From: Macrostomum hystrix
Lineage: Eukaryota > Animalia > Platyhelminthes
NCBI GenBank assembly: GCA_950097015.1
Contig: CATNEN010000031.1
Coordinates: 2,232,001-2,296,000, forward strand
DNA length: 64,000 nucleotides
Reading direction: 5' to 3'
Both the position numbers and the translations under genes were made by a program. The notes beneath the pieces are model-generated. The model was not told the origin of the DNA, ran no database searches, and saw only the letters and a program-made list of their open reading frames with translations. Of this stretch, positions 11,930 to 60,046 are shown piece by piece. Each line of letters opens with the position of its first letter. Positions within the stretch are counted from its first letter, which is position 1.

Positions 11930-11961
<32 letters not shown>

Positions 11962-13900: not shown

Positions 13901-14920
13901 CTAAATACCAGTCCGTTAAATCCAGCATTAACATATTAAATATTTAATTAATATAATTATAAATATAATTAAATATAACATATTAAAGTCTGTTAGTATT
14001 AACAGACCAATCCTCACCTGTGACTAAGAGTCTGTTGAGTAGATTATATTTATTTTCTTCTGCAGTCTGGCCTGATTAAAGCGATATTACCGGACCGTGT
14101 GTCCTGACCAATGTGCCGGCAGGAACAGAGCAGTGACGAAAGTGTTTTTTATTTTAGAATTGTAAACAGCCCTTAAACAGGTTGGGGGGTAGAATAAGAA
14201 ACTAGCTAGGAGATATATTATGGGATATATTATATGGGGATATATTAGCCTAGTCCGGTCCGGCGTGGCTAGAATGCAATTCACGGTCTAGTAAAATATC
14301 CTATCCCACCAATACCCGTGGGACCCCGCCGCCACAACTGCACAGCCAATAAGATTTCAAGTTCTTTAGTCTCCGGGGCTGCAGCCACCCCAAACAGCCC
14401 ATAGAATGCTAGCCAAAGCCAGTGCTGTTCCAGTGACCAACTGGGGTTAGAAGGGGTGTGTTCTGCAACAAGCTAGCTACTGGGGCTACAGAGGAATATA
14501 GAAACAATTGATTCATTATCCTCGGAGTTCACAATTTGTGTAACACTGAGCTGGCTCATGGAATCGGGAATCAGGGAATTTAAAGAGTTTGAACCAAGTT
14601 AAATGTTTTTAAAGAAAATCCCTTGTGTCTGTGTTGAAAATCTGTAAATACACGATGACATTGTCTTTGGCTAGTAACTATGTTAGTGTGCAATTTCAGA
14701 GATTGTTTCCATGATTCAGGATGATAAAATGCATATAGAGCTTGGTTAAAAGCATATCTGCTCACATCACAGTAGGAAATAGCGCTGAGCAGTTCCGGTG
14801 AATCGAATCTAAATGCGCATTTCCTGTGTGAGCTGAACTTAGACCCAATAAAATAATTTGATGCCAAACCAGCCCTGTTGGCAACCAAACAGAAACTAAG
14901 ATAAGGTTATTTGCATTGCA

Positions 14921-15759
14921 GGCTGCAGAATTCAGATATGCATGAGACCAGCTCAGATATTCAAGGGAATGGCACAGATATTCAAGGGAATGGCACAGAT
15001 ATTCAAGGGAATGGCACAGATATTCATGGGAATGGCACAGATATTGACGAAAATGGCACAGATATTCATGGGAATGGCACAGATATTGACGAAAATGGCA
15101 CAGATATTCAAGGGAATGGCACAGATATTCATGGGAATGGAACGGATATTGACGAGAATGGCACAGATATTCATGGGAATGGCACAGATATTGACGAAAA
15201 TGGCACAGATATTCATGGGAATGGCACAGATATTGACGAAAATGGCACAGATATTCATGGGAATGGCACAGATATTGACGAAAATGGCACAGATATTCAT
15301 GGGAATGGCACAGATATTCAAGGGAATGGTACAAATATTCTAGGGAATGACACGGATATTCATGAGAATGGCACAGATATTCAAGGGAATGGCACAGATA
15401 TTCATGGGAATGGCACAGATATTCAAGGGAATGACACGGATATTCATGGGAATAATACAGATATTCAAGGGAATGGCACAGATATTCATGGGAATGGCAC
15501 AGATATTCAAGGGAATGACACGGATATTCATGGGAATAATACAGATATTCAAGGGAATGGCACAGATATTCATGGGAATGGGACAGATATTCAAGGGAAT
15601 GACACAGATATTCATGGAAAGGTCACAGATTTTAATAAGAATGACGGAACAGTTCCCGAAAATGACAAAGCTATTTCTGAAAACGGCGGAAAACAATGTT
15701 GCTTATGGTTATGGTCACAGATAAATATTTCACTGGGCAAAATTTACTGCATGAATTGA
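14921..15759 (+). CDS. Putative coding exon of 21-bp/heptad repeats DI(H/Q/D)(G/E)N(G/D/N)T with 31 consecutive N-x-T sequons; parent gene unresolved
   Basis: The frame is open for 849 bp and preceded by TTTGCATTGCAG. Variants are often synonymous in this frame (GGC/GGA/GGT/GGG, ACA/ACG, GAA/GAG), and the non-synonymous ones keep N-x-T. Confidence 0.55.
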
Positions 15760-16290
15760 CATCACAACCTTTTCATCGCGCGCTGGTGTTTTCACAGAAT
15801 CGAAATGTGAATAGTGTCAGATAGTGCAGTTGGTTTAGTCGAGTCACTGACACATGAGGTCGCATCCAGCTGTGGTCAGACGGACCGCAATTCCTATAGG
15901 TATAGAATTACACCCCTGGCCAAGCCACGTTAGTTGATGGGCCATAAAATTCAGGCTGAAATGTCAGGCCGTGCTGCTGAGGGTCTGCATACTTTGCTAT
16001 TTGGCGGACTATGAGGATTCGGGAATTTGTGAATATCGAAGTTACACGACCACACACACACAAGAATCCAGTGTATGCTAGTGTGCATTTAACTGCACAC
16101 ATAAACCACACTGTAACTCCAAGCAATAGTTATCCTAGCAAATCAAATGACTATTTCAGTTAGTGAGCGAGTATATCTGCGTGTGTTTGCGAATGTCTAA
16201 TTTTAGCCGGATTTAAAAATCGATAAAATACGCTCGTTAAAATATTCCGTTAAAAATCGAGGACCACAGGAAGAATAACGGGTCACTTCG

Positions 16291-39149: not shown

Positions 39150-39472
39150 TAAATAAAATTAATTATAATCATAGTTGCCGGAGGGCACGCTGGGGGAAAG
39201 GCGCATCATTTGGTGACACTAGACCCGCAGCCAGCGAGGAGGCAATTCTGCCCATTTCCGCTGACTCCTGAGCACACACTCACACAGGTGTGCACATCTG
39301 TCCTGACTTTCTCATCGTCAGGCAGTGCACACTCTCACTGTGCCTTAAAGGTCGGCCCTCAAGCGCGTAAATTGCACGGCCAACCCCCAAAACCTTCTCT
39401 CAGAGGTTGCGCCCCAAGTGAATGTGGCCTCTCCGCGGAATCGAGCTCAGGGACCTTGGTGCGAGAGACCGC
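39150..39472 (-). mobile_element. SINE family A copy, 5'-truncated
   Basis: Reverse-complement match to the body and tail. Confidence 0.85.
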
Positions 39473-40173
39473 AGACATTCATTCAGCTTGGAATTGAGAA
39501 AACGTGACAAAAATTTGCGTTGCAGCTAAATGGTCCTCCTATTTTCTTTGCGGAAAATAAATCCTGTTTATAAGGGAGACAACAGTTAAAAAGTGCACGG
39601 TGAAGTCTGTATACATTACGTTGATTTTAAATTCTGCAAGACTCCACGAGCCACAGTAGAGAGGATAGATTAAGGAAGGACCCTGTTTCGCATACCCTTC
39701 ACAGCTAGCGCGCTCTTTTCTATCTGGGGTTCCTAATGTACAGCCGAATGTACATCATACATCTACAAACGGGCTTGGCAGGGGAGGAAGGGTGCGGGCA
39801 GTCTCACCCCAGCCAAAATAGAATTGATTTGAATGGAAAGTTGCCTAGTCTTTTTAAATTAGGTTTTTAAAGATAATTTTTTAATTAAGCCAAGATCAGG
39901 AAGGCAGGAGGGCAAATAGATCACTTGTTTGGGTCAAAGACAACTATAACGCTGTCTATTTATAACTTAAGTAAAGAAATCTGACAAGCTATGGACTCGA
40001 ACAAAGCGACTCAAAAGCCTTGTGAAGTTGGTTGTCAGATCGCTTCGTAGAATTTTACTTTTAATGCCATGTTATAAATGTTACAATCCTAAAATTCCTA
40101 ATGAGCCACTGCACATGTTGCCCTTTTTTAGCGTGATTCGGTGCTATTAGATTTGAACGAAAAGAACGAGGCA

Positions 40174-43100
40174 ATGTCCGAGCTGCTCTATCCGTCTCAA
40201 CAACGATTTCGACCGGGTTTACGTACACGCAGTCGAAGATGGCTGCTTGTTCTGCTGCTGTACCTCACGTCCTGCGCCGGTAAGTTCTGATCAAAGAGAA
40301 TTCTGACAATTTTTAGCTGACACAGCTTAGTAAAACTCACGTTAATTATCTTTGTACTCTATATCTAAGACTCTGGCCTTGTACCGCTTTACGCTTATAA
40401 TTAAATAAATAATATTAGTAATTGCAGGAGGCTGCGGGCAATGGCACATCATTTGGCGACACTAGACCCGCAGCCAGCGAGGAGGCAGTTCTGCCCATTT
40501 CGCTGACTCCTGAGCACACACTCACACAGGTGTGCACATCTGTCCTGACTTTCTCATCGTCAGGCAGTGTACACTCTCACTGTGCCTTGGAGGCTGGCCC
40601 TCAATGGCGTAAATTGCACGACAAGCCACCAAAACCTTCTCTCAGAGGTTGCGCCCCAAGTGAATGTGGCTTCGCCGCGGATTCGAGCTCAGGACCTTGG
40701 TGCGGGAGGCAAACACGTTAACCGCTCTGTTACTCACCCCTTTTTCGCTTAGGGCAACTTTTTTGTTGGTATTTTTATGCATTAGCCATTACATAACGAG
40801 CTTGTTTGAGCTTGAATCAAAGGTCGGGAGTTCAGTTGTGGGCCAAGGGAAAAAATTTGTGTGCTTGAGCAAGATGCTTTAAAATTGCCAATCATGGGAA
40901 ACTTAAGTAACGTATATCAGGACACAGCACTTGTTTTATGGAAATTACTCTGACATCTAAAGGCTACTTTCCTCGAAAATTAGATCGCCAATCTTCAACA
41001 TTGTATTACGGGAGTACTGTATCAGGTCAGATTGTGCATTTCTTCTTCTAGATCATTTTTTTCTATTTATCCCAATCCCTTTACAGGCAAAAGAGTTGCA
41101 GTACAACAGTCGCTGGTTGCCCAGTCCTGGCAGTCCAGTGTGTACATTGGCAACGAAGAGCACTGCTTCCTGTCCAAGCCGACTAGCCAGGAAAATTCAT
41201 GGGCCTATTTTCACTCTGGCGACGTGCCCGACGCTAACGGCTATCAGTGGCTGCTGTTGAAGCTCGCCCAGCCAGTCCGAATGGTGTCAGTGACCATCTT
41301 TGCTAGGCCGGGCGAAGGTCTGTGTCAGCTGCCTTCTCATTGTGATGTTTCTGTTTTGCTGAATGTTAATTAATGTTCATAACCGTTGAAAATACATGAT
41401 ATTGAGCCTGGCATACAGTTAATTTGAAATTTGTCAATCACTTGCCACGCAGTCAGCAGGCGGGTAGTCGGCACCGAGGTTCTGCTGGGTACCGCTCTGC
41501 CGGATGATCTGCTTCAGCCACGAAAGGACTCCCGCTGCTTGGCTAACCTGAGCAGTATGGCGGTGGCTAATGGGGCCTTCACCAATTCGTGCAGCCGGTC
41601 CGCGGGCCACGCCGAGCTGGACAGTTTGAAAATGGAATTCGCCTGCTTCAGGACCGATTGCGCCAGGGTATGTCCACTTGTTTGTCCCTGTGTCCACTTG
41701 TTTGTCCCTGTGTCCACTTGTGTGTCCCTGTGTCCACTTGTTTGTCCCTGTGTCCACTTGTTTGTCCCTGTGTCCGCTTGTTTGTCCCTGTGTCCACTTG
41801 TTTGTCCCTGTGTCCACTTGTGTGTCCCTGTGTCCACTTGTTTGTCCCTGTGTCCACTTGTTTGTCCCTGTGTCCACTTGTTTGTCCCTGTGTCCACTTG
41901 TTTGTCCCTGTGTCCACTTGTTTGTCCCTGTGTCCACTTGTTTGTCCCTGTGTCCGCTTGTTTGTCCCTGTGTCCACTTGTTTGTCCCTGTGTCCGCTTG
42001 TTTGTCCCTGTGTCCACTTGTTTGTCCCTGTGTCCGCTTGTTTGTCCCTGTGTCCACTTGTTTGTCCCTGTGTCCACTTGTTTGTCCCTGTGTTCACTTG
42101 TTTGTCCCTGTGTCCGCTTGTTTGTCCCTGTGTCCACTTGTTTGTCCCTGTGTCCACTTGTTTGTCCCTGTGTCCACTTGTTTGTCCCTGTGTCCGCTTG
42201 TTTGTCCCTGTGTCCACTTGTTTGTCCCTGTGTCCGCTTGTTTGTCCCTGTGTCCACTTGTTTGTCCCTGTGTCCACTTGTTTGTCCCTGTGTCCACTTG
42301 TTTGTCCCTGTGTCCACTTGTTTGTCCCTGTGTCCACTTGTTTGTCCCTGTGTCCACTTGTTTGTCCCTGTGTCCGCTTGTTTGTCCCTGTGTCCACTTG
42401 TTTGTCCCTGTGTCCGCTTGTTTGTCCCTGTGTCCACTTGTTTGTCTGTGTCCACTTTTTTCCATGTGTCCACTTTTTTCCATGTGTCCACTTCATTGTC
42501 CGTGTGTCCACTTCATTGTCCGTGTGTCCACTTCATTGTCCGTGTGTCTATTTCTTTGTGTGTGTCCGCTTGTTTGTTTGTGTGTCCACTTGTGCATCTT
42601 CCTGATACTATTGAGTGTGGATCATTTCACCTCTCCTTTTCTTTACTGCCAGTCTGAACAGTTTACAAAGTGTATTACGTGTAAAGACTGGAATTGAAAG
42701 AAACTGCATTACCTGCCACATGTTTTCTATAGGAGACTCGCTTCATTCTTGTTCGACGTCTGGTGCGCACGCCAGAGACAGACAAAATCTTCAACTTTAT
42801 CGGAATGGAACTGGAAGAAGGTAAACACTTTCTTGAGGATGCTGGAATGGGAGAATGGCAGGTTGGGGATGCTGGAATGGGAGAATGGCAGGTTAGGGAT
42901 GCTGGACTGGGACTGAGAGAATGGCAGGTTGGGGATGCTGGACTGGGACTGGGAGAATGGCAGGTTGGGGATGCTGGACTGGGAGAATGGCGGGTTGGGG
43001 ATGCTGGAATGGGAGAATGGCAGGTTAGGGATGCTGGACTGGGACTGGGAGAAAGGCAGGTTGGGGATGCTGGACTGGGAGAATGGCAGGTTGGGGATGC

Positions 43101-46100
43101 TGGACTGGGAGAATGGCGGGTTGGGGATGCTGGAATGGGAGAATGGCAGGTTAGGGATGCTGGACTGGGACTGGGAGAAAGGCAGGTTGGGGATGCTGGA
43201 CTGGGAGAATGGCAGGTTGGGGATGCTGGACTGGGAGAATGGCGGGTTGGGGATGCTGGAATGGGAGAATGGCAGGTTAGGGATGCTGGACTGGGACTGG
43301 GAGAATGGCAGGTTGGGGATGCTGGACTGGGACTGGGAGAATGGCAGGTTGGGGATGCTGGACTGGGAGAATGGCAGGTTGGGGATGCTGGACTGGGAGA
43401 ATGGCGGGTTGGGGATGCTGGAATGGGAGAATGGCAGGTTAGGGATGCTGGACTGGGACTGGGAGAAAGGCAGGTTGGGGATGCTGGACTGGGAGAATGG
43501 CAGGTTGGGGATGCTGGACTGGGAGAATGGCGGGTTGGGGATGCTGGAATGGGAGAATGGCAGGTTAGGGATGCTGGACTGGGACTGGGAGAATGGCAGG
43601 TTGGGGATGCTGGACTGGGACTGGGAGAATGGCAGGTTGGGGATGCTGGACTGGGAGAATGGCAGGTTGGGGATGCTGGACTGGGAGAATGGCGGGTTGG
43701 GGATGCTGGAATGGGAGAATGGCAGGTTAGGGATGCTGGACTGGGACTGGGAGAATGGCAGGTTGGGGATGCTGGACTGGGACTGGGAGAATGGCAGGTT
43801 GGGGATGCTGGACTGGGACTGGGAGAATGGCAGGTTGGGGATGCTGGACTGGGACTGGGAGAATGGCAGGTTGGGGATGCTGGACTGGGAGAATGGCGGG
43901 TTGGGGATGCTGGACTGGAAGAATGACAGGTTGGGGATGCTGGACTGGGAGAATGACAGGTTGAGGATGCTGGACTGGGAGAGTGACAGGTTGGGGATGC
44001 TGGACTGGGAGAATGACAGGTTGGGGATGCTGGACTGGGAGAATGACAGGTTGGGGATGCTGGACTGGAAGAATGACAGGTTGGGGATGCTGGACTGGGA
44101 GAATGACAGGTTGAGGATGCTGGACTGGGAGAGTGACAGGTTGAGGATGCTGGACTGGGAGAATGACAGGTTGGGGATGCTGGACTGGGAGAATGACAGG
44201 TTGGGGATGCTGGACTGGGAGAATGACAGGTTGGGGATGCTGGACTGGAAGAATGACAGGTTGGAGATGCTGGACTGGGAGAATGACATGTTGGGTATGC
44301 TGGACTGGGAGAATGGCAGGTTGGGGATGCTGGACTGGGAGAATGACAGGTTGGGGATGCTGGACTGGGAGAATGACAGGTTGGGGATGCTGGACTGGAA
44401 GAATGACAGGTTGGGGATGCTGGACTGGGAGAATGACAGGTTGGGGATGCTGGACTGGAAGAATGACAGGTTGGAGATGCTGGACTGGGAGAATGACATG
44501 TTGGGTATGCTGGACTGGGAGAATGGCAGGTTGGGGATGCTGGACTGGGACAATGACAGGTTGGGGATGCTGGACTGGGAGAATGACAGGTTGGAGATGC
44601 TGGACTGGGAGAATGGCAGGTTGGGGATGCTGGACTGGGAGAATGGCGGGTTGGGGATGCTGGACTGGGACAATGACAGGTTGGGGATGCTGGACTGGGA
44701 GAATGGCAGGTTGGGGATGCTGGACTGGGAGAATGGCGGGTTGGGGATGCTGGACTGGGACAATGACAGGTTGGGGATGCTGGAAAGTGCTGAAACTGGG
44801 AGAATGTGTGTCCAACTGTAATGTCGAAATGTTTTCAACGCACATCATCCGTGACTTGCTGAAGCTCCGCAGGCTGAGTTTCTGACTTGCTCCTTCGCTA
44901 CTCACGATGATAGCTGCTTGCGCAACGGCCTGCAGGTGCTTCGGTCCGGTCGGGATATAGAAATAGTAAAAGCTTGCCTGCCCTGCCAACCAATGGGAAT
45001 GGAATCAGTCGGTGCGCCCATCTGCCGGCTCAGCAAAAACAGGGACCGCCGACTGCGGATGGTCAGTACACCACAATGAGCAATTGTTTTAGCGACACTA
45101 GCTATCACTGAGAATCAGGTGTGGGTACACCTGTGTGCACTGGTCACTTACTGAATATTTTATCCCTCAACTGCCTGCAATTTCAGCGCATTACTAATAA
45201 AACGCTACCGGAGTTCAAAGTGATCGTTCCGCACTGTCCCCTGTGCGAACTGAAGTGCAACTACAGATGCGTTGGTCAGCCGGACGTGCTTAATGAACTC
45301 TCTGAGATTCTTCGTTTACAAGGTAGGTCTGTGCCAAGAGATTTGTTTGAGTAACATTGAAGGTCACTAAATGAGCAAGTGGTGACATAAAAAATACTAG
45401 ATGATTGAGAAAAATAATAGACTCTTGAAAATCACTGGATGATTGAGTGAGATACTGGGGACCTTGAAAATCACAGGATAATTGAGAGAGATACTAGTGA
45501 CCTTGAAAATCACAGGATAATTGAGTGACATACTGGTGACCTTGAAAACCACTGGATGATTGAGTGACATACAGGTGAGCTTGAAAATCACTGGGTGATT
45601 GAGTGACATACTGGTGACCTTGAAAATCACAGATGATTGAGTGAGATACTGGTGACCTTGAAAATCACTGGATGATTGAGTGGCATACAAGTGACCTTGA
45701 AAATCACTGGATGATTGAGTGGCATACAAGTGACCTTGAAAATCACTGGGTGATTGAGTGAGATACTGGTGACCTTGAAAATAAATTTTTCGCGTGACAT
45801 GATTGCGGCCTTGGAAATCATAAGTCGGGTGAGCTAATTGGGACCCGGAAAATCGCTGCACGGCCGGTTAAAGATGACGATGACCTTGACAAGTTACTAT
45901 AGCGCTAAATTATTTTAAAGCGACTATGAAAAGTGAAAAGTAATTGATTATCTGTAAGCTTGTCGTTGTAACTGCCTGCCCACCCCAAAATCTGATTGAT
46001 TATAGTAAAGCCGCGCGCTGTCAAGCTGCAATTCGGCGAAGGCAACTTGGCTGGGCATCAGCAGCAGCTGCTGCAGCGCTTTTGGCCAGCGAACACTGAT

Positions 46101-49100
46101 GCAATATTCCTATTCTTCACTGAGTCCGGCCTACCAAAGCCTGAGCACAGCTGTGTACTCACTGGCGGCCAGTGCGCCCTTGGCGGCACAGTGCTCATCC
46201 CTGAACAAGAGAGTGTAAGCATTTCTGCATGGATTGGGGTGGCGCTGGTGTACAACCAATTAATATTCAGTAAGCCAATTTATTTTAGGTTCAAGCAGAG
46301 AACGGCCTGGGTTCGAGCCTGACTTACAGCCTGTCCAGCAAGTATCGCCTGTTCGCCAATGCTTCCATTGAGCATTGCGTCTTGGTGTGCGTGACGCAAC
46401 AGCCTGGCACCGATTGGAGCGTCACTAAGCGGGAAAACATGCCCCAGCTTGTCTGTGAGCCTCTCTTTGTACCTGATCTAAAAACTGACTTTTAGAAGAC
46501 AGGCTTGAGTAGATGAGGGAGACAGGCTTTGAGGCCTAATTAGTTGAGGGAGACAGGCTTTGAGGCTTAATTAGTTGAGGGAGACAGGCTTTGAGGCTTA
46601 ATTAGTTGAGGGAGACAGGCTTTGAGGCTTAATTAGTTGAGGGAGACAAGCTTTGAGACTGCAGTAGTTGAGGTAGACAGGCTTTGAGACTGCAGTAGTT
46701 GAGGGAGACAAGCTTTGAGACTGCAGTGGTTGAGGGAGACAAGCTTTGAGACTGCAGTAGATGAGGGAGACAGGCTTTGAGACTGCAGTAGATGAGGGAG
46801 ACAAGCTTTGAGACTGCAGTAGATGAGGGAGACAAGCTTTAAGGCTTAAGTAGTTGAGGGAGACATGCTTTAAGGCTTGAGTAGTTGAGGGAGACAGGCT
46901 TTGAGACTGCAGTAGATGAGGGAGACAAGCTTTGAGACTGCAGTAGATGAGGGAGACAAGCTTGAAGGATTGAGTAGATGAGGGAGACAAGCTTGAAGGA
47001 TTGAGTAGATGAGGGAGACAAGCTTTAGGGATTGAGTAGATGAGGGAGACATGCTTTAAGGATTGAGTAGATGAGGGAGACAGGCTTTAGGGATTGAGTA
47101 GATGAGGGAGACAAGCTTTAAGGATTGAGTAGATGAGGGAGACAAGCTTGAAGGATTGAGTAGATGAGGGAGGCAAGCTTTAAGGATTGAGTAGTTGAGG
47201 GAGACAAGCTTTAAGGATTGAGTAGATGAGGGAGGCAAGTTTTAAGGATTGAGTAGATGAGGGAGTCAAGCTTCAAGGATTGAGTAGTTGAGGGAGACAA
47301 GCTTTAAGGATTGAGTAGTTGAGGAAGACAAGCTTTAAGGATTGAGTAGATGAGGGAGTCAAGCTTTAAGGATTGAGTAGATGAGGGAGTCAAGCTTTAA
47401 GGATTGAGTAGATGAGGGAGACAAGCTTTAAGGATTGAGTAGATGAGGGAGGCAAGCTTTAAGGATTGAGTAGATGAGGGAGACAAGCTTTAAGGATTGA
47501 GTCGATGAGGGAGACAAGCTTTAGGGATTGAGTAGATGAGGGAGACAAGCTTTAAGGATTGAGTAGATGAGGGAGACAAGCTTTAAGGATTGAGTAGATG
47601 AGGGAGACAAGCTTTAGGGATTGAGTAGATGAGGGAGACAAGCTTTAAGGATTGAGTAGATGAGGGAGACAAGCTTTAGGGATTGAGTAGTTGAGGGAGA
47701 CAAGCTTTAGGGATTGAGTAGATGAGGGAGACAAGCTTTAAGGATTGAGTAGATGAGGGAGACAAGCTTTAAGGATTGAGTAGTTGAGGGAGACAAGCTT
47801 TAAGGATTGAGTAGTTGAGGGAGACAAGCTTTAAGGATTGAATAGATGAGGGAGACAAGCTTTAGGGATTGAGTAGATGAGGGAGACAAGCTTTAAGGAT
47901 TGAGTAGTTGAGGGAGACAAGCTTTAAGGATTGAGTAGATGAGGGAGACAAGCTTTAGGGATTGAGTAGTTGAGGGAGACAAGCTTTAAGGATTGAGTAG
48001 ATGAGGGAGACAAGCTTTAAGGATTGAGTAGTTGAGGGAGGCAAGCTTTAAGGATTGAGTAGATGAGGGAGACAAGCTTTAAGGATTGAGTAGATGAGGG
48101 AGACAAGCTTTAAGGATTGAGTAGATGAGGGAGACAAGCTTTAAGGATTGAGTAGATGAGGGAGACAAGCTTTAAGGATTGAGTAGATGAGGGAGACAAG
48201 CTTTAAGGATTGAGTAGATGAGGGAGACAAGCTTTAAGGATTGAGTAGATGAGGGAGACAAGCTTTAGGGATTGAGTAGATGAGGGAGACAAGCTTTAAG
48301 GATTGAGTAGTTGAGAGAGACAAGCTTTAAGGATTGAGTAGATGAGGGAGACAAGCTTTAAGGATTGAGTAGATGAGGGAGACAAGCTTTAAGGATTGAG
48401 TAGATGAGGGAGACAAGCTTTAAGGATTGAGTAGTTGAGGGAGGCAAGCTTTAAGGATTGAGTAGATGAGGGAGACAAGCTGTAGGGATTGAGTAGATGA
48501 GGGAGACAAGCTTTAGGGATTGAGTAGTTGAGGGAGACAAGCTTTTAGGATTGAGTAGATGAGGGAGACAAGCTTTAAGGATTGAGTAGTTGAGGGAGAC
48601 AAGCTTTTAGGATTGAGTAGTTGAGGGAGACAAGCTTTAGGGATTGAGTAGATGAGGGAGACAAGCTTTAAGGATTGAGTAGTTGAGGGAGTCAAGCTTT
48701 AAGGATTGAGTAGATGAGGGAGACAAGCTTCAAGGATTGAGTAGTTGAGGGAGACAAGCTTTAAGGATTGAGTAGATGAGGGAGACAAGCTTTAAGGATT
48801 GAGTAGATGAGGGAGACAAGCTTTAAGGATTGAGTAGATGAGGGAGACAAGCTTTAAGGATTGAGTAGATGAGGGAGACAAGCTTTAAGGATTGAGTAGA
48901 TGAGGGAGACAAGCTTTAAGGATTGAGTAGATGAGGGAGACAAGCTTTAGGGATTGAGTAGTTGAGGGAGACAAGCTTTAAGGATTGAGTAGATGAGGGA
49001 GACAAGCTTTAAGGATTGAGTAGATGAGGGAGACAAGCTTCAAGGATTGAGTAGTTGAGGGAGACAAGCTTTAAGGATTGAGTAGATGAGGGAGACAAGC

Positions 49101-52100
49101 TTTAAGGATTGAGTAGATGAGGGAGTCAAGCTTTAAGGATTGAGTAGATGAGGGAGACAAGCTTTAAGGATTGAGTAGATGAGGGAGACAAGCTTTAAGG
49201 ATTGAGTAGATGAGGGAGACAAGCTTTAAGGATTGAGTAGATGAGGGAGACAAGCTTTAAGGATTGAGTAGATGAGGGAGACAAGCTTTAAGGATTGAGT
49301 AGATGAGGGAGACAAGCTTTAAGGATTGAGTAGATGAGGGAGACAAGCTTTAAGGATTGAGTAGTTGAGGGAGACAAGCTTTAAGGATTGAGTAGATGAG
49401 GGAGACAAGCTTTAAGGATTGAGTAGATGAGGGAGACAAGCTTTAAGGATTGAGTAGATGAGGGAGACAAGCTTTAAGGATTGAGTAGATGAGGGAGACA
49501 AGCTTTAAGGATTGAGTAGTTGAGGGAGGCAAGCTTTAAGGATTGAGTAGATGAGGGAGACAAGCTGTAGGGATTGAGTAGATGAGGGAGACAAGCTTTA
49601 AGGATTGAGTAGATGAGGGAGACAAGCTTTAAGGATTGAGTAGTTGAGGGAGGCAAGCTTTAAGGATTGAGTAGTTGAGGGAGGCAAGCTTTAAGGATTG
49701 AGTAGATGAGGGAGACAAGCTTTAAGGATTGAGTAGATGAGGGAGACAAGCTTTAGGGATTGAGTAGTTGAGGGAGACAAGCTTTAAGGATTGAGTAGAT
49801 GAGGGAGACAAGCTTTAAGGATTGAGTAGATGAGGGAGACAAGCTTTTAGGATTGAGTAGTTGAGGGAGGCAAGCTTTAAGGATTGAGTAGTTGAGGGAG
49901 ATAAGCTTTAAGGATTGAGTAGATGAGGGAGGCAAGCTTTAAGGATTGAGTAGTTGAGGGAGATAAGCTTTAAGGATTGAGTAGATGAGGGAGACAAGCT
50001 TTAAGGATTGAGTAGTTGAGGGAGACAAGCTTTAAGGATTGAGTAGTTGAGGGAGATAAGCTTTAAGGATTGAGTAGTTGAGGGAGACAAGCTTTAAGGA
50101 TTGAGTAGATGAGGGAGACAAGCTTTAAGGATTGAGTAGTTGAGGGAGGCAAGCTTTAAGGATTGAGTAGTTGAGGGAGACAAGCTTTAAGGATTGAGTA
50201 GATGAGGGAGTCAAGCTTTAAGGATTGAGTAGTTGAGGGAGATAAGCTTTAAGGATTGAGTAGTTGAGGGAGACAAGCTTGAGAATTCGAGGGAGACTTT
50301 GAGACTGCGTAATGATTAGAGTGGGCGTTGGTCCTTGCAGATAAATGCAAAACTAAATTTGAGCTGACGCCAAGTGCGAACTGGGTCGAAGGCGCGACAG
50401 TCAATATCGTTGTTGATTCCTCTGCAAACAATGTTGTGCCTACAAGCCACACGTGTCACCTACGGACTACAAAAGGCGGAGTTGTCAGCCTGAGTGCTGT
50501 TGAGGTAAAGAAATAGGGAATATGAGGTATTGGATTTAACTGCACGGGGCTAGAGGAAAGTTGATACATCGCATAATGGAATCCAATTATTATCCTGCGG
50601 TCGAAAAAATTGTAACGTAATTTAGTGGAAAATTGTAGTGGAATACAGTTGAAAATTGTAGTGAAATCCAGTGAGAATTGTAGTGGAATCCAGTGAGAAT
50701 TGTAGTGGAATCCAGTGGAAAATTGTAGTGAAATCTAGTGAGAATTGTAGTGAAATCCAGTGGAAAATTGTAGTGAAATCCAGTGAGAATTGTAGTGAAA
50801 TCCAGTGAGAATTGTAGTGGAATCCAGTGGAAAATTGTAGTGAAATCCAGTGAGAATTGTAGTGGAATCCAGTGGAAAATTGTAGTGAAATCCTGTGAAA
50901 ATTGTAGTGAAATCCAGTGAGAATTGTAGTGAAATCCAGTGAGAATTGTAGTTGAATCCAGTGGATAATTGTAGTGGAGTCCAGTGAGAATTGTAGTGAA
51001 ATCCAGTGAGAATTGTAGTGGAATCCAGTGGAAAATTGTAGTGAAATCCAGTGAGAATTGTAGTGGAATCCAGTGGAAAATTGTAGTGAAATCCTGTGAA
51101 AATTGTAGTGAAATCCAGTGAGAATTGTAGTGAAATCCAGTGAGAATTGTAGTTGAATCCAGTGGATAATTGTAGTGGAGTCCAGTGAGAATTGTAGTGG
51201 AATCCAGTGAAAATTGTAGTGAAATCCAGTGAGAATTGTAGTGAAATCCAGTGAGAATTGTAGTGAAATCCAGTGAGAATTGTAGTGAAATCCAGTGAGA
51301 ATTGTAGTGGAATCCAGTGGAAAATTGTAGTGGAATCCAGTGAGAATTGTAGTGGAATCCAGTGGAAAATTATAGTGAAATCCAGTGAGAATTGTAGTGA
51401 AATCCAGTGAAAATTGTAGTGGAATCCAGTGGAAAATTGTAGTGAAATCCAGTGAGAATTGTAGTGAAATCCAGTGAGAATTGTAGTGGAATCCAGTGAG
51501 AATTGTAGTGAAATCCAGTGAGAATTGTAGTGAAATCCAGTGAGAATTGTAGTGAAATCCAGTGAAAATTGTAGTGGAATCCAGTGGAAAATTGTAGTGA
51601 AATCCAGTGAGAATTGTAGTGAAATCCAGTGAGAATTGTAGTGAAATCCAGTGGAAAATTGTAGTGAAATCCAGTGAGAATTGTAGTGGAATCCAGTGGA
51701 AAATTGTAGTGAAATCCAGTGAAAATTGTAGTGAAATCCAGTGAGAATTGTAGTGAAATCCAGTGAGAATTGTAGTTGAATCCAGTGGATAATTGTAGTG
51801 GAGTCCAGTGAGAATTGTAGTGGAATCCAGTGAAAATTGTAGTGGAATCCAGTGGAAAATTGTAGTGAAATCCAGTGAGAATTGTAGTGAAATCCAGTGA
51901 AAATTGTAGTGGAATCCAGTGGAAAATTGTAGTGAAATCCAGTGAGAATTGTAGTGAAATCCAGTGAGAATTGTAGTGAAATCCAGTGAGAATTGTAGTG
52001 AAATCCAGTGAAAATTGTAGTGGAATCCAGTGGAAAATTGTAGTGAAATCCAGTGAGAATTGTAGTGAAATCCAGTGAGAATTGTAGTGGAAATCCAGTG

Positions 52101-55100
52101 GAAAATTGTAGTGAAATCCAGTGAGAATTGTAGTGGAATCCAGTGGAAAATTGTAGTGAAATCCAGTGAAAATTGTAGTGAAATCCAGTGAGAAATTGTA
52201 GTGAAATCCAGTGAGAATTGTAGTTGAATCCAGTGGATAATTGTAGTGGAGTCCAGTGAGAATTGTAGTGGAATCAGTGAAAATTGTAGTGAAATCCAGT
52301 GAGAATTGTAGTGAAATCCAGTGAGAATTGTAGTGGAATCCAGTGAGAATTGTAGTGGAATCCAGTGAGAATTGTAGTGGAATCCAGTGGAAAATTGTAG
52401 TGAAATCTAGTGAGAATTGTAGTGAAATCCAGTGGAAAATTGTAGTGAAATCCAGTGAGAATTGTAGTGAAATCCAGTGAGAATTGTAGTGGAATCCAGT
52501 GGAAAATTGTAGTGAAATCCAGTGAGAATTGTAGTGGAATCCAGTGGAAAATTGTAGTGAAATCCTGTGAAAATTGTAGTGAAATCCAGTGAGAATTGTA
52601 GTGAAATCCAGTGAGAATTGTAGTTGAATCCAGTGGATAATTGTAGTGGAGTCCAGTGAGAATTGTAGTGAAATCCAGTGAGAATTGTAGTGGAATCCAG
52701 TGGAAAATTGTAGTGAAATCCAGTGAGAATTGTAGTGGAATCCAGTGGAAAATTGTAGTGAAATCCTGTGAAAATTGTAGTGAAATCCAGTGAGAATTGT
52801 AGTGAAATCCAGTGAGAATTGTAGTTGAATCCAGTGGATAATTGTAGTGGAGTCCAGTGAGAATTGTAGTGGAATCCAGTGAAAATTGTAGTGAAATCCA
52901 GTGAGAATTGTAGTGAAATCCAGTGAGAATTGTAGTGAAATCCAGTGAGAATTGTAGTGAAATCCAGTGAGAATTGTAGTGGAATCCAGTGGAAAATTGT
53001 AGTGGAATCCAGTGAGAATTGTAGTGGAATCCAGTGGAAAATTATAGTGAAATCCAGTGAGAATTGTAGTGAAATCCAGTGAAAATTGTAGTGGAATCCA
53101 GTGGAAAATTGTAGTGAAATCCAGTGAGAATTGTAGTGAAATCCAGTGAGAATTGTAGTGGAATCCAGTGAGAATTGTAGTGAAATCCAGTGAGAATTGT
53201 AGTGAAATCCAGTGAGAATTGTAGTGAAATCCAGTGAAAATTGTAGTGGAATCCAGTGGAAAATTGTAGTGAAATCCAGTGAGAATTGTAGTGAAATCCA
53301 GTGAGAATTGTAGTGAAATCCAGTGGAAAATTGTAGTGAAATCCAGTGAGAATTGTAGTGGAATCCAGTGGAAAATTGTAGTGAAATCCAGTGAAAATTG
53401 TAGTGAAATCCAGTGAGAATTGTAGTGAAATCCAGTGAGAATTGTAGTTGAATCCAGTGGATAATTGTAGTGGAGTCCAGTGAGAATTGTAGTGGAATCC
53501 AGTGAAAATTGTAGTGGAATCCAGTGGAAAATTGTAGTGAAATCCAGTGAGAATTGTAGTGAAATCCAGTGAAAATTGTAGTGGAATCCAGTGGAAAATT
53601 GTAGTGAAATCCAGTGAGAATTGTAGTGAAATCCAGTGAGAATTGTAGTGAAATCCAGTGAGAATTGTAGTGAAATCCAGTGAAAATTGTAGTGGAATCC
53701 AGTGGAAAATTGTAGTGAAATCCAGTGAGAATTGTAGTGAAATCCAGTGAGAATTGTAGTGGAATCCAGTGGAAAATTGTAGTGAAATCCAGTGAGAATT
53801 GTAGTGGAATCCAGTGGAAAATTGTAGTGAAATCCAGTGAAAATTGTAGTGAAATCCAGTGAGAATTGTAGTGAAATCCAGTGAGAATTGTAGTTGAATC
53901 CAGTGGATAATTGTAGTGGAGTCCAGTGAGAATTGTAGTGGAATCCAGTGAAAATTGTAGTGAAATCCAGTGAGAATTGTAGTGAAATCCAGTGAGAATT
54001 GTAGTGGAATCCAGTGAGAATTGTAGTGGAATCCAGTGGAAAATTGTAGTGAAATCCAGTGAGAATTGTAGTGGAATCCAGTGAGAATTGTAGTGGAATC
54101 CAGTGAGAATTGTAGTGGAATCCAGTGGAAACTTTTTATAAAATCCGGTAGAATTTGTAGTGTAATCCGGTAGACAATTGTAATGGAATCCGGTGGAATA
54201 TTGTAATGGAATCCGGTGGAATATTGTAATGGAATCCGGTGGAAAATTGTAAAGGAATCCGGTGGAAAATTGTAATGGAATCCGGTGGAAAATTGTAATG
54301 GAATCCGGTGGAAAATTGTAATGGAATCCAGTGGAAAATTGAAATGAAATAAGTGGATAATTGAAATGGAATCCGGTGGAAAATTATAATGAAGTAAGTG
54401 GATAATTGAAATGGAATCCGGTGGAAAATTATAATGAAATAAGTGGATAATTGAAATGGAATCCGGTGGAAACTTATAATGAAATAAGTGGATAATTGAA
54501 ATGGAATCGTCATTGAAATGGACGGTGATTTCCGCCTATTTCAGAACAGAGGCCAGACAAGCACCTTTAGGTTGACACTGAGCCGCCACTGGGGCCAGAG
54601 AGTGTCCATTGCCTGCCAAGTCAACCAGTCTGGCTTGCTTGTGGCCGAAGAAACTCACCTGCTGCCCGATGTCATGCGTGAGTTTTGGCTAGCGGAAACT
54701 GCAGCTACGCTCATATTTGATGTTTCTGATCATCATTTGCCAATCCTAACTAGGTTTGATTTCTTTCAGACAAAGCGGAGGCCCAGATTTCTAGTTGCTA
54801 TGCTGACCTTGACAGCATTAAGATCACTGTGGTGACAACCGGTGGCACACCGACACCTAAATCCGTCCTGTGTGCCATTGGCAAGGACAAAAAATCGGTA
54901 AGCTTATTTCTGATCACGTAGATATTTGAGGGGTTTTTTGAATCCATCAGGATTATTATAATTTTTGGTACTATCGGATTCACGGAGATTATCAGAATCG
55001 GTGGGATTAACTGAATCGGTGGGATTAGCAGAATCGGTGGGATTAGCTGAATCGGTGGGATTATCAGAATCAGTGGGATTAACTGAATCGGTGGGATTAA

Positions 55101-57728
55101 CTGAATCGGTGGGATTATCAGAATCGGTCCGATTAACTGAATCGGTGGGATTAGCAGAATCGGTGGGATTAGCTGAATCGGTGGGATTACCAGAATCAGT
55201 GGGATTTCCAGAATCAGTAGGATTGCCAGAATCAGTGGGATTGCTAGAATCAGTGGAATGGCAAAATCAGTGGGATTGCCAGAATCAGTGGGATTTCCAG
55301 AATCAGTAGGATTGCTAGAATCAGTGGGATTGCCAGAATCAGTGGGATTATCAGAATCAGTGGGATTGCTAGAATCAGTGGGATTGCCAGAATCAGTTGG
55401 ATTATCAGAATCAGTAGGATTATCAGAATCAGTTGGACTATCAGAATCAGTGGGATTACCAGAATCAGTGGGATTACCAGAATCAGTGGGATTACCAGAA
55501 TCAGTTGGATTATCAGAATCAGTGGGATTATCAGAATCAGTGGGATTATCAGAATCAGTGGGATTATCAGAATCAGTGGGATTGCCAGAATCAGTGGGAT
55601 TGCCAGAATCAGTGGGATTATCAGAATCTGTGGGATTGCCAGAATCAGTGGGATTGCCAGAATCAGTGGGATTACCAGAATCAGTGGGATTGCCAGAATC
55701 AGTGGGATTGCCAGAATCAGTGGGATTACCAGAATCAGTGGGATTTTCAGAATCAGTGGGATTGCCAGAATCAGTGGGATTACCAGAATCAGTGGGATTA
55801 CCAGAATCAGTGGGATTAGCTGAATCAGTGGGATTAACACACCTAGTGGGATGTTCAAAATGCTGGGAATTTTCCGCGCTAGACAGTGGAGAGTCGATAA
55901 GATAACTAGCCCAATAACCTATTTGAATGCTGCAAACTCAGGTGAACGCCAGCAGCTTCAGACTGAACTCAATCGGCTCAATGACTTGGGACTTCAGGCC
56001 GACTCATGCGCGGCTTATGCCCTCTGGCGGCAAGATTTATTGCACGGTGACGCAAATCGGCCAGACTGACAAGGCCAAAATTGCAACTGTCCACGATGCC
56101 ACCTTTAAGACTGTGCCACCGTGCGAAGGTGAAGTGTTATTTCAGACATTTTTTCTAGAGCAAAGGCAAGGTCAGCCATCAAAGGCGTAACTAGATGTGG
56201 ATTTATTAGTTTCAAACTTGCTATTCTCTATCACATTTAGTTCCTTGGTTAACTGAAATCTACGGTGAGTAGTAAGTTTGCAGCTTGGTGCAGCACTAAT
56301 AAGGGGTTGCAGCTAGGTGCAGCACTAACAAGGGGAGTTGCAGCTAGGTGCAGCACTAATAAGGGGTTGCAACTTGGTGCAGCACTAATAGGGGGGTTGC
56401 AGCTTGGTGCAGCACTAATAAGGGGGTTGCAGCTTGGTGCAGCACTAATAAGGGGGTTGCAGCTTGGTGCAGCACTAATAAGGGGAGTTGCAGCTTGGTG
56501 CAGCACTAATAAGGGGGTTGCAGCTTGGTGCAGCACTAATAAGGGGTTGCAACTTGGTGCAGTACTAATAGGGGGGTTGCAGCTTGGTGCAGCACTAATA
56601 AGGGGGTTGCAGCTTGGTGCAGCACTAATAAGGGAGTTGTAGCCTAGGGGTTAGTGTCGGACTCATAACTTAAGGGTCGGGGGTTCGATTCCTGACTCCA
56701 CAAAGACCAATCTCAGATGTTTTCATGACACTAAACTTTGCATTTCTTCAGATCATCCTGCTGTTAGATGGGTTAGCTGTTGTCTCCCAGTCCATGGACT
56801 GAACAGCAGTACGCAGCCTTCAGATGCGCCGCGCAATAGCTGCGGCTGTGCTGTCGGCTTCACATCTGACCCAATAGGGACAGTTATAAACTATTAATAT
56901 TTTTTATTAGCAAGTTTGTTCACTATATTGTGAAAGCGAAATCAGCGTTCACAGATGAATATGACATTAATTGTTAACAAAACTAGTAACAAAAAGAGCT
57001 TACAGAAAGTGCAACTACACTCACCCATTATACTCGTAGTATTTGCAGGGGCTGTAGGCTCTGGCTCGTCATTTTTTAACAGCCGACCCCAGCTACTCTG
57101 CCCATTCCGCTAAGATACTCGTAGGCACATGAGTACATCTGCCCTGACTTTCTCGAGCTCTCTACGACTGCTCCTTTGGGTTGTTACTGTGTGGATTCGA
57201 GCCCGCGTTAACCCGCTCCGCCACTGAATTCGCCTCGCAGATGGAATCAACCTCTGGAAGGTGGGCATCATAGTGATTGCGGCGGTATCGATCGGGCCGT
57301 TCCTAATCGCCTGGGTGTACTCCCTGGCGCGCCTCTCGCGCAAGGCTCTGCTCAAGCACCGCCGCGGCAGCTGGACTCCATCGCAGATCCACATGGCCAC
57401 CTACGAGCGTCAGGGCAGCGTTGATGAGGACGGCTTCTCCGAATGGGGCCAGCTTGGCCGCGGTGCTCAATCCAGCGGTTCCAACTTGGCCGCGTCCACC
57501 TGCAACACCTTGGTGGGGCCGGTAGATAGCGCCAGCCAAATGAACTGCTGCGGCAATGAGTTACAGCATCGGCTCGAGCCGCAGAAGGCTGTCTATACCA
57601 AAGTTGTCTCTGTTGAGCAGTGCAAGAATGAGGTGAGCAGATCTAGCGCCAGCTTGAACACGGAATACGTGGATATTGTCGGCTGTAGTTCCACTGCTCA
57701 AAAGGCCCTGCAGAACAACACTGCCTGA
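40174..57728 (+). CDS. Type I membrane receptor, ~815 aa: signal peptide, F-type-lectin/discoidin-like domain, divergent Ig-like domains, TM, ITIM-like/ITSM tail. Exons 40174-40279, 41087-41317, 41453-41667, 42733-42820, 44865-45061, 45187-45322, 46006-46214, 46289-46454, 50341-50504, 54545-54677, 54770-54897, 55942-56128, 57241-57728
   Basis: All 12 introns are GT-AG with matching phase, and the exons sum to 2448 nt (816 codons) with no internal stop. Hydrophobic leader WLLVLLLYLTSCAG; QWLLLKLAQPVRMVSVTIFAR (FTP-like); YRC, GLPKP, VQAENGLG, SIACQVNQ, GGTPTP, KIYCTVTQ (Ig-like); TM GIIVIAAVSIGPFLIAWVYSLA. The acceptor at 44864 (AAG) is the weakest junction. Confidence 0.75.
40410..40742 (-). 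mobile_element. SINE family A copy in receptor intron 1
   Basis: Reverse-complement match including head and tail. Confidence 0.85.
41670..42600. repeat. 20-bp minisatellite (TGTCCACTTGTTTGTCCCTG)n, receptor intron 3
   Basis: Begins 2 nt after the GT donor at 41668. Confidence 0.95.
42837..44783. repeat. 30/36-bp G-rich minisatellite (GATGCTGGACTGGGAGAATGGCAGGTTGGG)n, receptor intron 4
   Basis: Direct tandem repetition with two sub-domains of variant units. Confidence 0.95.
45425..45780. repeat. 39-bp minisatellite (GACCTTGAAAATCACTGGATGATTGAGTGAGATACTGGT)n, receptor intron 6
   Basis: About 9 copies. Confidence 0.9.
46497..50300. repeat. 31-bp minisatellite (GAGGGAGACAAGCTTTAAGGATTGAGTAGAT)n, 3.8 kb, receptor intron 8
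   Basis: Direct tandem repetition; the unit changes along the array (GAGACTGCAG-type at the left end). Confidence 0.97.
50620..54510. repeat. 22-23-bp minisatellite (GTGAAATCCAGTGAGAATTGTA)n with a 1672-bp higher-order duplication, receptor intron 9
   Basis: Rare variants AAATCTAGTG (50731, 52403) and AATTATAGTG (51368, 53040) recur 1672 bp apart. Confidence 0.95.
54985..55835. repeat. 18-bp minisatellite (GAATCAGTGGGATTACCA)n, receptor intron 11
   Basis: Direct tandem repetition. Confidence 0.95.
56275..56642. repeat. 30-31-bp minisatellite (GTTGCAGCTTGGTGCAGCACTAATAAGGGG)n, receptor intron 12
   Basis: About 12 copies. Confidence 0.93.
56637..56702 (+). pseudogene. tRNA-Met-like SINE head or tRNA pseudogene (related fragment at ~61885-61953)
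   Basis: GTAGCCTAGGGGTTAG...CTCATAA...GGTTCGATTCC gives an A box, a CAT anticodon-like loop and a B box, but no complete acceptor stem. Confidence 0.45.
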
Positions 57729-60046
57729 TGCGGCAGTTCTGGCTGATTTTTATTTTATCATGATCAAATTGATTGATTACATTAAATGCTAGGTATTTGT
57801 ACCGAAACTTGATTCTCGTAGTTACACGAGTAACTACATAGTTTGGAGTACATACCGACGATAGCAATGGTCAGACAATTGCTTTGGTTAATACTCTATT
57901 AGAGTGTCCAGGTATACATGCACATTTAGTTTTTCCGTGGCGACAATAACGTTCAAGTAGCTCATAACGCAGGTTTCTTATTGATTTTGATTTACGTAAT
58001 CGATCAAAGCAACATTATAGTGATAAACTTTTCGAATCCAGTCGCAAACAAATATAAATAAAACAGTAATGAGCAAGTGCAGTACAAGCGAAAAGCGTTT
58101 GTAACCGTTATATCCTTCAAAAGATGTTACTTTCTTGTGATTTTTTGAAAACACGGGCTTTTTCACCATTCGCTGCCTAAGTTTATTGTCAGAACAGTAG
58201 ACGCAACGAAACGAGGAAGTTAGGCCACTACTTGTGCTTCTGTGGAATCAGTCTGATAGGGTTAAGGCAAAACTTGCTAGATTATTTAGGGAGGCAAAAC
58301 ACAGACAAACGCCATGCCCCAGCGCCTAGCTACAAAAGCAAAACCGACGACAGGAGGCAAGCCAGCTTAGTTGCATGAGGAATAACAGAAATATAAAAAA
58401 GACACCAATCCGTATGGAAATTAATTGTTTCTGAAGACGCAGAAAAGCACGCCCATTGAAGTATGCCGGAGACAAAACACTACTGAGACAAAATCTGAAC
58501 AGCGATAACGCTCCGATTGACATTTTAAATTGAAGTAGAATTGTAAAGTAAAATAATTAACAAATATAGTGCCGCAGATGCAGCGGATAGATTCTGCATT
58601 AAAAAACAGAACTTTAATCTGAAAAAAAGGCTAAAATTAACTCTGACAAATGTTTTTGAGTGGTAATAAACCCACATGCTGTTTTTTTCGAATAACTTTT
58701 TGCTTGCCTCTGGCAACACCAGCATTTCATATGCTAAAAATAAATACAAAAAGACGCTTAAATAATAACTCCATTTAGGCGTATATGGGTTTGGAAAGCG
58801 CTAATCTATGCTTTTAGACAGCTCTAACACAGTTTAGTACAGCAATACTGCAGTGATTGGTGACAGCAACCAATCCAGTGTCTCGGTAAGAACAATCCAC
58901 AATTAATCTAGGCTTGCGGAATGCCTAGCAAGTCTGAATTACCCTATATCTGTTTTAGCGTAAGTTTTATGTGCGGTCTTTAACAGAGCACGGGAAATCT
59001 AATTTTCTACTGAGTAAATAATTAAAAATGGAAAAATACAAAAAGGCGAAAAGTGCCTGCAATCTCTAACCTAGGATAGAGAATATTGGGGATAGCACTT
59101 GCAAAAGACGTGGTCTTAAAGTCTATAGTTACCGAATATTACCCTAATCTGAAACGATTAATTAATAAAGAATAAATCTAACTTCATACTATTAGCGACT
59201 CACGCATTTGCAAGCGCCATAAAAGCTGAATAGTAAACTTATTATAAGAGACACACAGATAACGGAACAACGGAAATTAAACGGAAATACAATCGTTAAA
59301 GCCATCGGAACACTAGCCGGCATTTGGGGGGGTTACAATCAGCCTAGGATTGGCTCGCCTCAAAGTACCGACATTCAGATGGAGCAGTTGCAGAGAGCAG
59401 CTCCGGCACAAACCAGCTTTGAAAACTGAAAATGTAACCAACAGACCAGCTGGCTTTTTTTAAGTTCGAGCGAATCAGTAAAGAATATTTTTTTGGAGTT
59501 AATTAATGAAAACAACTGGCTCGGGGCTTTTTGTTAAGAACAAGAAAACACCAGGCGAATTTGTTTGTTTTGCAATTTTTTTGTTTTCAAGTCCACGCCG
59601 AGCTGAGACAGACAATACGGTCTCTATCAAATACCTTTAATTTTAATTGTTAGTTTTTTTTTTAATTTTTAACGTTTATTCAATTGACGAATTAAGACAA
59701 TTGATCGTTCGACCTTCATAGTTCTCTGCTCAGCGGGAACTCAAAGATTTTTAAGCATAGAAGACGCGTTAATGAGGGCACGACACGAATATGTGTGCGC
59801 AGAAATGACAGTTTATTAGCGATGCGAACTTATGAGGTTATAAACGAGGAGCTGTCAAACAGGTGGACGCAACCAAGGCAGTGGTGTGGTAATTTTTTTG
59901 TTAAAAAACGCAAACAATCTTTTAAACCAGGGTTTAGTGGGTCTTTTGGAACAAACACGCAGAAACTACTAGCCCTTCAAATGACGCTTGAAAAAAGAAG
60001 CATTGACCAAAATATGTGCCCGTAGCAATCGCAGCTTCATCTTTCA

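Follow-up and report, generated by a model that had tools for sequence, protein, structure and literature searches.

The 64,000-nucleotide stretch of Macrostomum hystrix DNA analyzed here (the window; contig CATNEN010000031.1 of assembly GCA_950097015.1, positions 2,232,001 to 2,296,000) carries on its + strand, at window positions 40174-57728, what is almost certainly one transcribed gene of 13 exons encoding a type I membrane protein of 815 amino acids (aa), with a lectin-like head, a stalk of immunoglobulin (Ig)-like units, a single transmembrane (TM) helix and a cytoplasmic tail. An earlier note on this DNA had proposed such a receptor gene, with 12 GT-AG introns joining exons of 88-488 bp into one 815-aa frame. 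Reconstruction returned exactly this structure: the 13 exons total 2448 nt and form a single open frame ending in a stop codon, and all 12 introns of the receptor gene model are of the GT..AG type. The model has since been borne out by a colinear orthologue and by exon joints in RNA from the same species, and wherever it can be checked it is exact to the base. All domain borders of the protein coincide with phase-1 introns, and each module of the stalk is split once by a phase-0 intron; extracellular modules that spread by shuffling classically show this arrangement.

Querying 1.84 billion representative proteins with exon 2 alone yielded the orthologue, an 804-aa protein from Macrostomum lignano (P0001; 63% identity, E=1.7e-25 for this exon). 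The protein is deposited as PAA49974.1 / A0A267DMT8 (BOX15_Mlig012130g1) and annotated as 'hypothetical protein.' The 815-aa product is colinear with PAA49974.1 over 802 residues (46% identity, 652 bits), and the alignment is free of insertions and deletions at all exon junctions except for a 5-residue difference at the junction of exons 11 and 12. When the orthologue was searched against the 64-kb window by tblastn, it matched exons 2-13 in order and nothing else, leaving the receptor gene solitary in the window. In the M. lignano locus (L001, gene at 4223-15969), the protein is broken at the same positions, and a PABP-like gene lies 3' of the receptor gene in both species (18042-25969 of L001; 60858-63717 here). 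This neighbor encodes RRM domains and an MLLE domain, is placed on the - strand by the annotation of its orthologue, and is conserved between the species in position and orientation. Because the exon breaks and the PABP-like neighbor are the same, the receptor and M. lignano Mlig012130/Mlig034318 are positional orthologues.

Evidence for transcription and splicing comes from assembled contigs of three same-species RNA runs (X4, X7 and X13), which were laid on positions 44790-46500. One contig from each run (2871, 2936 and 4317 nt) carries the joints 45061>45187, 45322>46006 and 46214>46289 with zero mismatches, the first two of which are both GT..AG. The loose ends of the contigs match uniquely to 42787-42820 (the end of exon 4) and to 50341-50370 (the start of exon 9), thereby confirming junctions 42820>44865 and 46454>50341, the two that the earlier note had singled out for checking. 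The contigs leave room for 640 nt of coding sequence (CDS) and a leader of 75-174 nt upstream of exon 5, and for 1100 nt of CDS and an untranslated region (UTR) downstream of exon 8; their lengths are as expected for one mRNA. Direct RNA joints therefore cover junctions 4-8, while for junctions 1-3 and 9-12 the support comes from the orthologue and the lengths of the contigs. The share of sampled sequence words recovered in the RNA runs fits the ends of the gene as well: 0.31-0.32 for 40100-41670 in runs X4, X7, X13 and X14, as fits exons 1-3, and 0.63 for 56900-57900 in runs X4-X7, as fits exon 13 and the 3' UTR. From a relative's RNA (run X11), nothing was placed on 44790-46500 at 90% likeness. 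Separately, the 4317-nt contig of run X7 extends ~1.8 kb past the stop codon, compared with ~250-400 nt in X13 and X4; the extension could reflect an extended 3' UTR, read-through or chimerism of the contig. Signals of the AATAAA/ATTAAA type are located at 57781 and 58057.

An obvious objection is that the model is an artefact, either of chance frames chained together or of two merged genes. An in-frame GT-AG chain alone proves little, because such chains are easily obtained at this locus: a naive splice-chain search also returned several in-frame chains that were too long (13-16 exons) and wrong. They include spurious exons such as a repeat copy in intron 1 and were rejected as evidence. It also counts on the side of this objection that direct RNA joints are confined to the middle of the gene. 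Against it, the orthologue is colinear at all junctions, the exon structure in M. lignano is the same, and the RNA contigs span exons 4-9 with lengths that fit the coding sequence and UTRs on both sides. An artefact is thus extremely improbable, and the locus holds a single gene rather than two or more, as originally proposed.

Exon 1 (40174-40279) opens with an ATG that is the first in frame after a stop codon and ends in phase 1 at the donor GTAAGT. Its product reads as a putative signal peptide, with a basic n-region, the hydrophobic core WLLVLLLYLTSCA and small residues. The head (aa ~36-213) follows in three exons. Exon 2 (41087-41317) starts the domain with SWQSS and encodes His78 (41212-41214) and Arg109 (41305-41307); exon 3 (41453-41667) covers its middle part, including Arg116 (41461-41463), the equivalent of Arg86 in the eel agglutinin AAA; and exon 4 (42733-42820), only 88 bp long, supplies the final strands (TRFILVRRL...IFNFIGMELEE), ends in phase 1, and is 75% identical to the orthologue.

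By sequence profile and structural model, this head is a divergent F-type lectin domain (FTLD). The orthologue head, the three exons of the window and four paralogues from M. lignano were combined into a profile (A2), which was compared with 177,635 PDB sequences, and the only credible matches were FBP32 (3cqo, E=3.5e-8) and eel agglutinin (1k12, E=1.6e-3). An AF2 model of the orthologue head (pLDDT 63, pTM 0.67) was then compared with known structures: Foldseek ranked 1k12 first, and VIA-align gave Z scores of 9.6-9.8 over 110-119 residues to 3cqo, 1k12, 3le0 and 2j1r, which are FBP32, AAA, lectinolysin and the pneumococcal fucose module SpX. These results uphold the F-type-lectin-like head that had been proposed from the letters. 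The Foldseek matches also include DDR1, SUN and muskelin; the fold alone is that of a galactose-binding-like jelly roll, and it is because of the sequence profile that the domain is assigned to the F-type lectins.

In F-type lectins, the fucose motif is HX24RXDX4(R/K): fucose is contacted by His52, Arg79 and Arg86, the Cys82-Cys83 pair stacks against it, and there is a calcium motif of the form h2DGx (PMC5712786). In every aligned member of the Macrostomum family, a His, an Arg and a second Arg are invariant. The better-scoring alignment, to the C-domain of FBP32, places His78, Arg109 and Arg116 on the fucose triad, with the loop after His 4 residues longer, and the sugar-contacting His/Arg/Arg triad thus appears to be kept.

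Several points weigh against a glycan-binding FTLD. With regard to the fold, the confidence of the model is middling, some CBM32 and CBM62 modules score level with F-type lectins, and the orthologue matches no Pfam model at threshold. Single-exon translations and the full-length family members likewise gave no Pfam match at threshold, and F5_F8_type_C and F5_F8_type_C_2 appear only below threshold, in two paralogues. As to the binding site, the strict motif fails: the sequence reads His78-x30-Arg109-Pro-Gly-x4-Arg116, with a longer spacing and Gly in place of Asp. The calcium motif is VYIGN instead of AIDGN, its Asp being lost, and the segment is deleted in the paralogues; Glu-Val occupies the positions of the vicinal Cys82-Cys83, which are absent. 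Moreover, the HMMER alignment to 1k12 puts His52 of AAA on a Pro five residues later. These altered motifs may mean that binding differs from that of fucose, or that it has been lost. The earlier note had described the fucose signature as not intact and suggested that the ligand may not be fucose. The first part stands for the strict motif; as to the second, the His/Arg/Arg triad is apparently kept and a fucose-type ligand is consequently still conceivable. We regard the question of whether the head binds a glycan as evenly balanced.

The distribution of sequence change along the protein bears on what the head might recognize. Identity to the orthologue is highest in the head (58%) and amounts to 39-50% elsewhere, with the tail and the cysteine-rich module of the stalk both at 39%. 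With the head as the most conserved part and a positional orthologue in M. lignano, the comparison favors a conserved ligand over diversifying recognition in the case of this gene. For the same reasons a hypervariable gene of polymorphic allorecognition or diversified immune recognition, by analogy with Alr, is disfavored here and very improbable. The receptor is solitary in the window and its orthologue lies in conserved synteny; the M. lignano cluster at 90% identity contains three full-length copies with few differences (P0012 is 98% identical to P0001); and no variant letters were found over 708 exonic bases in the three RNA runs, whose contigs drop rare variants.

A receptor for gametes or mates, comparable to oyster bindin, itself built of FTLDs, is another candidate in a genus of hermaphrodites whose reproductive traits evolve fast. 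FTLDs act in oyster fertilization (PMC5712786; PMC12221842), and the 46% identity to M. lignano is low next to the neighboring PABP-like gene, pieces of which are 84-96% identical in translated comparison, although PABP is an unfair baseline. Sexual conflict, however, predicts the reverse of the observed order, in which the head has evolved slowest and the tail and cysteine-rich module fastest. A role in gamete recognition is therefore improbable.

Between head and membrane lies a stalk that consists of a cysteine-rich module (aa 214-324) and three Ig-like units (aa 325-653, two exons each). The cysteine-rich module of ~110 aa is encoded in halves by exon 5 (44865-45061), located by an RNA piece and the orthologue alignment, and exon 6 (45187-45322), with RNA joints on both sides in three runs. 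Ten of its 111 aa are Cys, and hhalign gave no significant similarity to the Ig-like units; in a language-model feature search the module reached Ig-type clusters at 0.77-0.79, below the meaningful level. Ig-like unit A (aa 325-449) is formed by exon 7 (46006-46214), which contains FLFFTESGLPKPEHSC and is covered by RNA pieces, and exon 8 (46289-46454), attached by the RNA joint 46214>46289. Unit B (aa 450-548) comprises exon 9 (50341-50504), reached by the RNA loose end, and exon 10 (54545-54677), which the orthologue alignment places and which encodes strands E-F-G (VSIACQVNQSG). Unit C (aa 549-653) is made up of exon 11 (54770-54897), 64% identical to the orthologue, and exon 12 (55942-56128), again placed by the orthologue alignment, which selects 56128 as the donor in preference to 56170.

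The Ig-like character of the units is supported by structure more than by sequence motifs. Modeled from an alignment of 17 repeat units, unit B of the orthologue gave an eight-stranded sandwich at pLDDT 89.4 and pTM 0.78, and its top structural matches were basigin, sDscam Ig1, CD8a and nectin-2 (TMq 0.6-0.69). An alignment of exon fragments to the full orthologue by MAFFT had misplaced the fragments and was excluded from folding. A profile of the units matched Ig constant domains weakly, at E of about 1e-3 over the E-F strands. By hhalign, unit B is related to unit A (E=1e-4) and to unit C (E=2e-4), and no significant match was obtained between A and C. In the units, Cys is missing from the predicted B strand and occurs in strands C and F, so that the hallmark combination of a B-F disulfide and a C-strand Trp is absent from them. 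Pfam Ig models did not match the orthologue, and a paralogue, P0006, gave a borderline match to C2-set_2 (21 bits against a cut-off of 21). Of the four to five divergent Ig-like segments initially counted, three thus hold as demonstrable Ig-like units with non-canonical cysteines; the module of exons 5 and 6, which lacks profile similarity to them, is counted apart.

Exon 13 (57241-57728) encodes a linker, the TM helix, a cytoplasmic tail of ~130 aa and the stop codon. The only strong hydrophobic span is at aa 658-683 (57252-57329). Within a tail that is otherwise little conserved, several blocks are shared with the orthologue: RRGSW[TS]PS, MATY, AASTCNTL, [AV]VY[TA][KQ]V and SAASL[NA]TEY[VT][DE]IV. 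Two of them are juxtamembrane, RRGSW[TS]PS at 57360-57383 and MATY[ES]R at 57393-57410. The first includes RRxS, a serine site of the type used by basophilic kinases, and phosphorylation of Ser may be a further means of regulating the tail.

Two tyrosine motifs follow. The distal one, TEY796VDIV (57660-57680), is of the immunoreceptor tyrosine-based switch motif (ITSM) type, TxYxx(V/I). The orthologue has TEYTEIV at this place, and near the C-terminus of paralogues P0013 and P0016 the motif recurs as TEYLDIV and TEYLEII. Identity between P0013 and the orthologue is only 19-25%, in the head as well as over the whole protein; since so short a motif survives at that distance, TEYx[DE]I[VI] is very probably functional. 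The proximal motif, AVY772TKV (57588-57605), corresponds to VVYAQV in the orthologue, and Y772 lies 24 residues upstream of Y796 (the separation of the two motifs is 24-27 residues). A spacing of 24-27 residues is in the range used by tandem SH2 domains, as in PECAM-1, PD-1 and Siglecs. The paired-tyrosine tail of ~130 aa and the TM helix described earlier are thus both present, with the distal motif conserved; the proximal one is not a canonical inhibitory motif of the immunoreceptor tyrosine-based type (ITIM).

On these grounds, the following mechanism can be proposed. The membrane-distal FTLD would bind a glycan ligand, possibly of the fucose type, through His78, Arg109 and Arg116. Engagement or clustering by the ligand would lead to phosphorylation of tail tyrosines, chiefly Tyr796 and also Tyr772, and the phosphotyrosines would recruit SH2-domain proteins, the pair being suited to a tandem-SH2 phosphatase of the SHP-2/Csw type. 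With such a phosphatase docked, the protein would act as a modulatory receptor, probably an inhibitory one, in analogy to CD33-type Siglecs or PECAM-1. As a whole, this explanation (the gene, the FTLD/Ig architecture and a glycan-binding signaling receptor) is, in our estimate, on balance marginally probable. Its signaling step taken separately, through SH2 domains or a phosphatase, is tentative and rather doubtful, and the suggestion that signaling is inhibitory derives entirely from the motifs. An immune or recognition role, as suggested in the earlier note, is a reasonable conjecture. Two features of the tail count against the proposal: the proximal motif has Ala at -2 and so departs from the canonical ITIM, (I/V/L/S)xYxx(I/V/L), which VVYAQV of the orthologue does fit; and both tyrosine motifs (YTKV and YVDI) also fit YxxPhi sorting signals.

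The latter point leads to an alternative, in which the protein is an adhesion or endocytic (scavenger-type) receptor that mediates cell-cell or cell-matrix contact or captures cargo, its tyrosines serving as YxxPhi signals for AP-2. Stalks of the immunoglobulin superfamily (IgSF) are typical of adhesion molecules, the head is conserved and not diversified, and the galactose-binding-like fold also binds protein and lipid, as in discoidin and C2 domains (PMC5712786). By contrast, the profile similarity of the head is specific to F-type lectins rather than discoidin receptors. The Thr at -2 and Glu at -1 of the distal motif are kept in distant paralogues; YxxPhi signals need neither, whereas SH2 recognition of the ITSM type uses the -2 position, and the Thr-Glu pair before Tyr would thus weakly favor SH2 recognition. 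We consider the adhesion or endocytic alternative possible, if unlikely. A broader version of the signaling proposal would see a lectin checkpoint in Macrostomum, that is, a set of genus-restricted receptors that sense cell-surface or microbial glycans and damp responses through an ITSM/ITIM tail and an SHP-2-like phosphatase, convergent with Siglecs and with the present gene as a conserved core member. This would be a speculative extension that we hold to be distinctly unlikely.

Several known systems resemble the receptor in part. The CD33-related Siglecs share its layout of a lectin head, an Ig stalk, a TM helix, a proximal ITIM-type motif and a distal TEYxE[IV]-type motif ~20-25 residues apart. 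The distal motif of CD33 and of Siglec-7 and -9 is [TN]EYSE[IV]. However, the lectin domain of Siglecs is a V-set Ig domain with an Arg essential for sialic acid binding, whereas here it is an FTLD without sequence relationship to it; the likeness is convergent at most, and the receptor is not a member of that family. PECAM-1 and other IgSF receptors with ITIM/ITSM motifs likewise combine multiple Ig-like domains and one TM helix with paired ITIM- and ITSM-type tyrosines at an SHP-2-compatible spacing, but they have no lectin head and possess canonical Ig disulfides, in contrast to the units described here, with Cys in strands C and F and none in strand B. The snail FREPs and amphioxus VCBPs are also lineage-restricted and also join IgSF domains to a carbohydrate-binding domain; they differ in being secreted and in using fibrinogen-like or chitin-binding domains, whereas the receptor described here is anchored in the membrane and has an FTLD and a signaling-type tail.

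With the F-type lectins themselves (AAA, 1k12; FBP32, 3cqo), the head shares profile similarity, the jelly-roll fold, the QSS start, a W..L core, an Arg pair in the CDR4 region, the closing strand LE[VI]EE and, apparently, the basic triad; it differs in the 4 extra residues after His, the Asp-to-Gly change, the altered calcium motif and the lack of vicinal Cys. Classical F-type lectins are soluble, with single or tandem FTLDs, and here one FTLD sits atop a membrane-anchored Ig stalk. In two reviews, F-type lectins are described as soluble or as mosaics with pentraxin, CTLD, CCP, TM or FA58C elements (PMC5712786; PMC12221842). Drosophila Furrowed/CG9095 is likewise a single-pass membrane protein with one FTLD in a mosaic ectodomain (PMC5712786). 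It combines the FTLD with a C-type lectin domain (CTLD) and CCP (sushi) domains, where the present receptor has Ig-like units and a cysteine-rich module, and its tail is different; no Pfam match to CTLD or sushi domains was obtained in the orthologue or the paralogues.

An FTLD on an Ig stalk, or with an ITIM-type tail, was not found in term searches of these two reviews (PMC5712786; PMC12221842), and a literature search for FTLDs combined with Ig or ITIM returned nothing relevant. The statement in the earlier note that no described family has this combination accordingly stands within those sources. The protein already exists as a database entry, an uncharacterized one from M. lignano. No publications were found on the M. 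lignano orthologue genes. Judged from the sequences, the receptor is best described as a new domain combination, in a family whose relatives were found only in Macrostomum.

Within M. lignano, paralogues, which had been suggested as worth looking for, were indeed found: several groups carry one to several Ig units, unlike the stalk described here. The paralogues A0A1I8GPA9, A0A267H4Q8 and A0A1I8J1S8 have the head in common, and two of them the TEY tail. Family members are named 'hypothetical' in databases or bear misleading automatic labels. Outside Macrostomum, the exon 2 search of representative proteins returned no credible relatives. Two matches, P0004 from Strongyloides and P0008 from an actinobacterium, were rejected as spurious, consisting of multiple short stretches with Pfam noise of the low-complexity type. 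A word-indexed protein search with the tail exon gave no match, but was length-limited; with the whole orthologue, the same kind of search found only the orthologue itself and missed known paralogues, and it is uninformative on the range of the family. Two shorter M. lignano entries deserve mention. P0011 (676 aa) equals the orthologue as far as the center of the TM helix, after which come 7 unrelated residues; it could be a tail-less isoform or a break in assembly or annotation. In P0002 (331 aa), part of the lectin head is skipped.

The surroundings of the exons are unusual. The region from 40 to 58 kb is composed mostly of tandem arrays with periods of 18-39 bp, G-rich on the + strand, and because these arrays dominate, a mechanical list of open reading frames there shows mostly repeat translations. 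Minisatellite arrays with 18-39-bp units, the longest reaching 3.8 kb, fill 7 of the 12 introns (41671-42593, 42833-44784, 45424-45782, 46501-50280, 50628-54393, 54987-55836 and 56278-56643) and are G-rich on the sense strand, with a GC skew of +0.3 to +0.7. The M. lignano orthologue (L001 4322-14244) also has arrays in most introns, several of them likewise G-rich on the sense strand, and their units are unrelated (26-, 54-, 34- and 22-mers, TCTG and TTAG). As arrays are present in both species with unrelated units, the arrays themselves turn over while the presence of arrays in introns persists. In addition, an interspersed element of ~290 bp occurs in two copies, one upstream of the gene (39210-39497) and one in intron 1 (40422-40721), with a near-identical ORF-like translation (ORF, open reading frame); it looks like a short interspersed nuclear element (SINE)-like repeat.

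Real genes in the genome of Macrostomum hystrix can thus hide as exons of 88-488 bp among kilobases of intronic satellite. If the head of this receptor binds glycans and its tail recruits SH2 phosphatases, flatworms would possess a lectin-plus-ITIM logic independent of Siglecs, which would bear on how often inhibitory glycan sensing has evolved. M. lignano is a laboratory model in which RNA interference and transgenesis are established, and the clear orthologue in that species makes the hypothesis directly testable.

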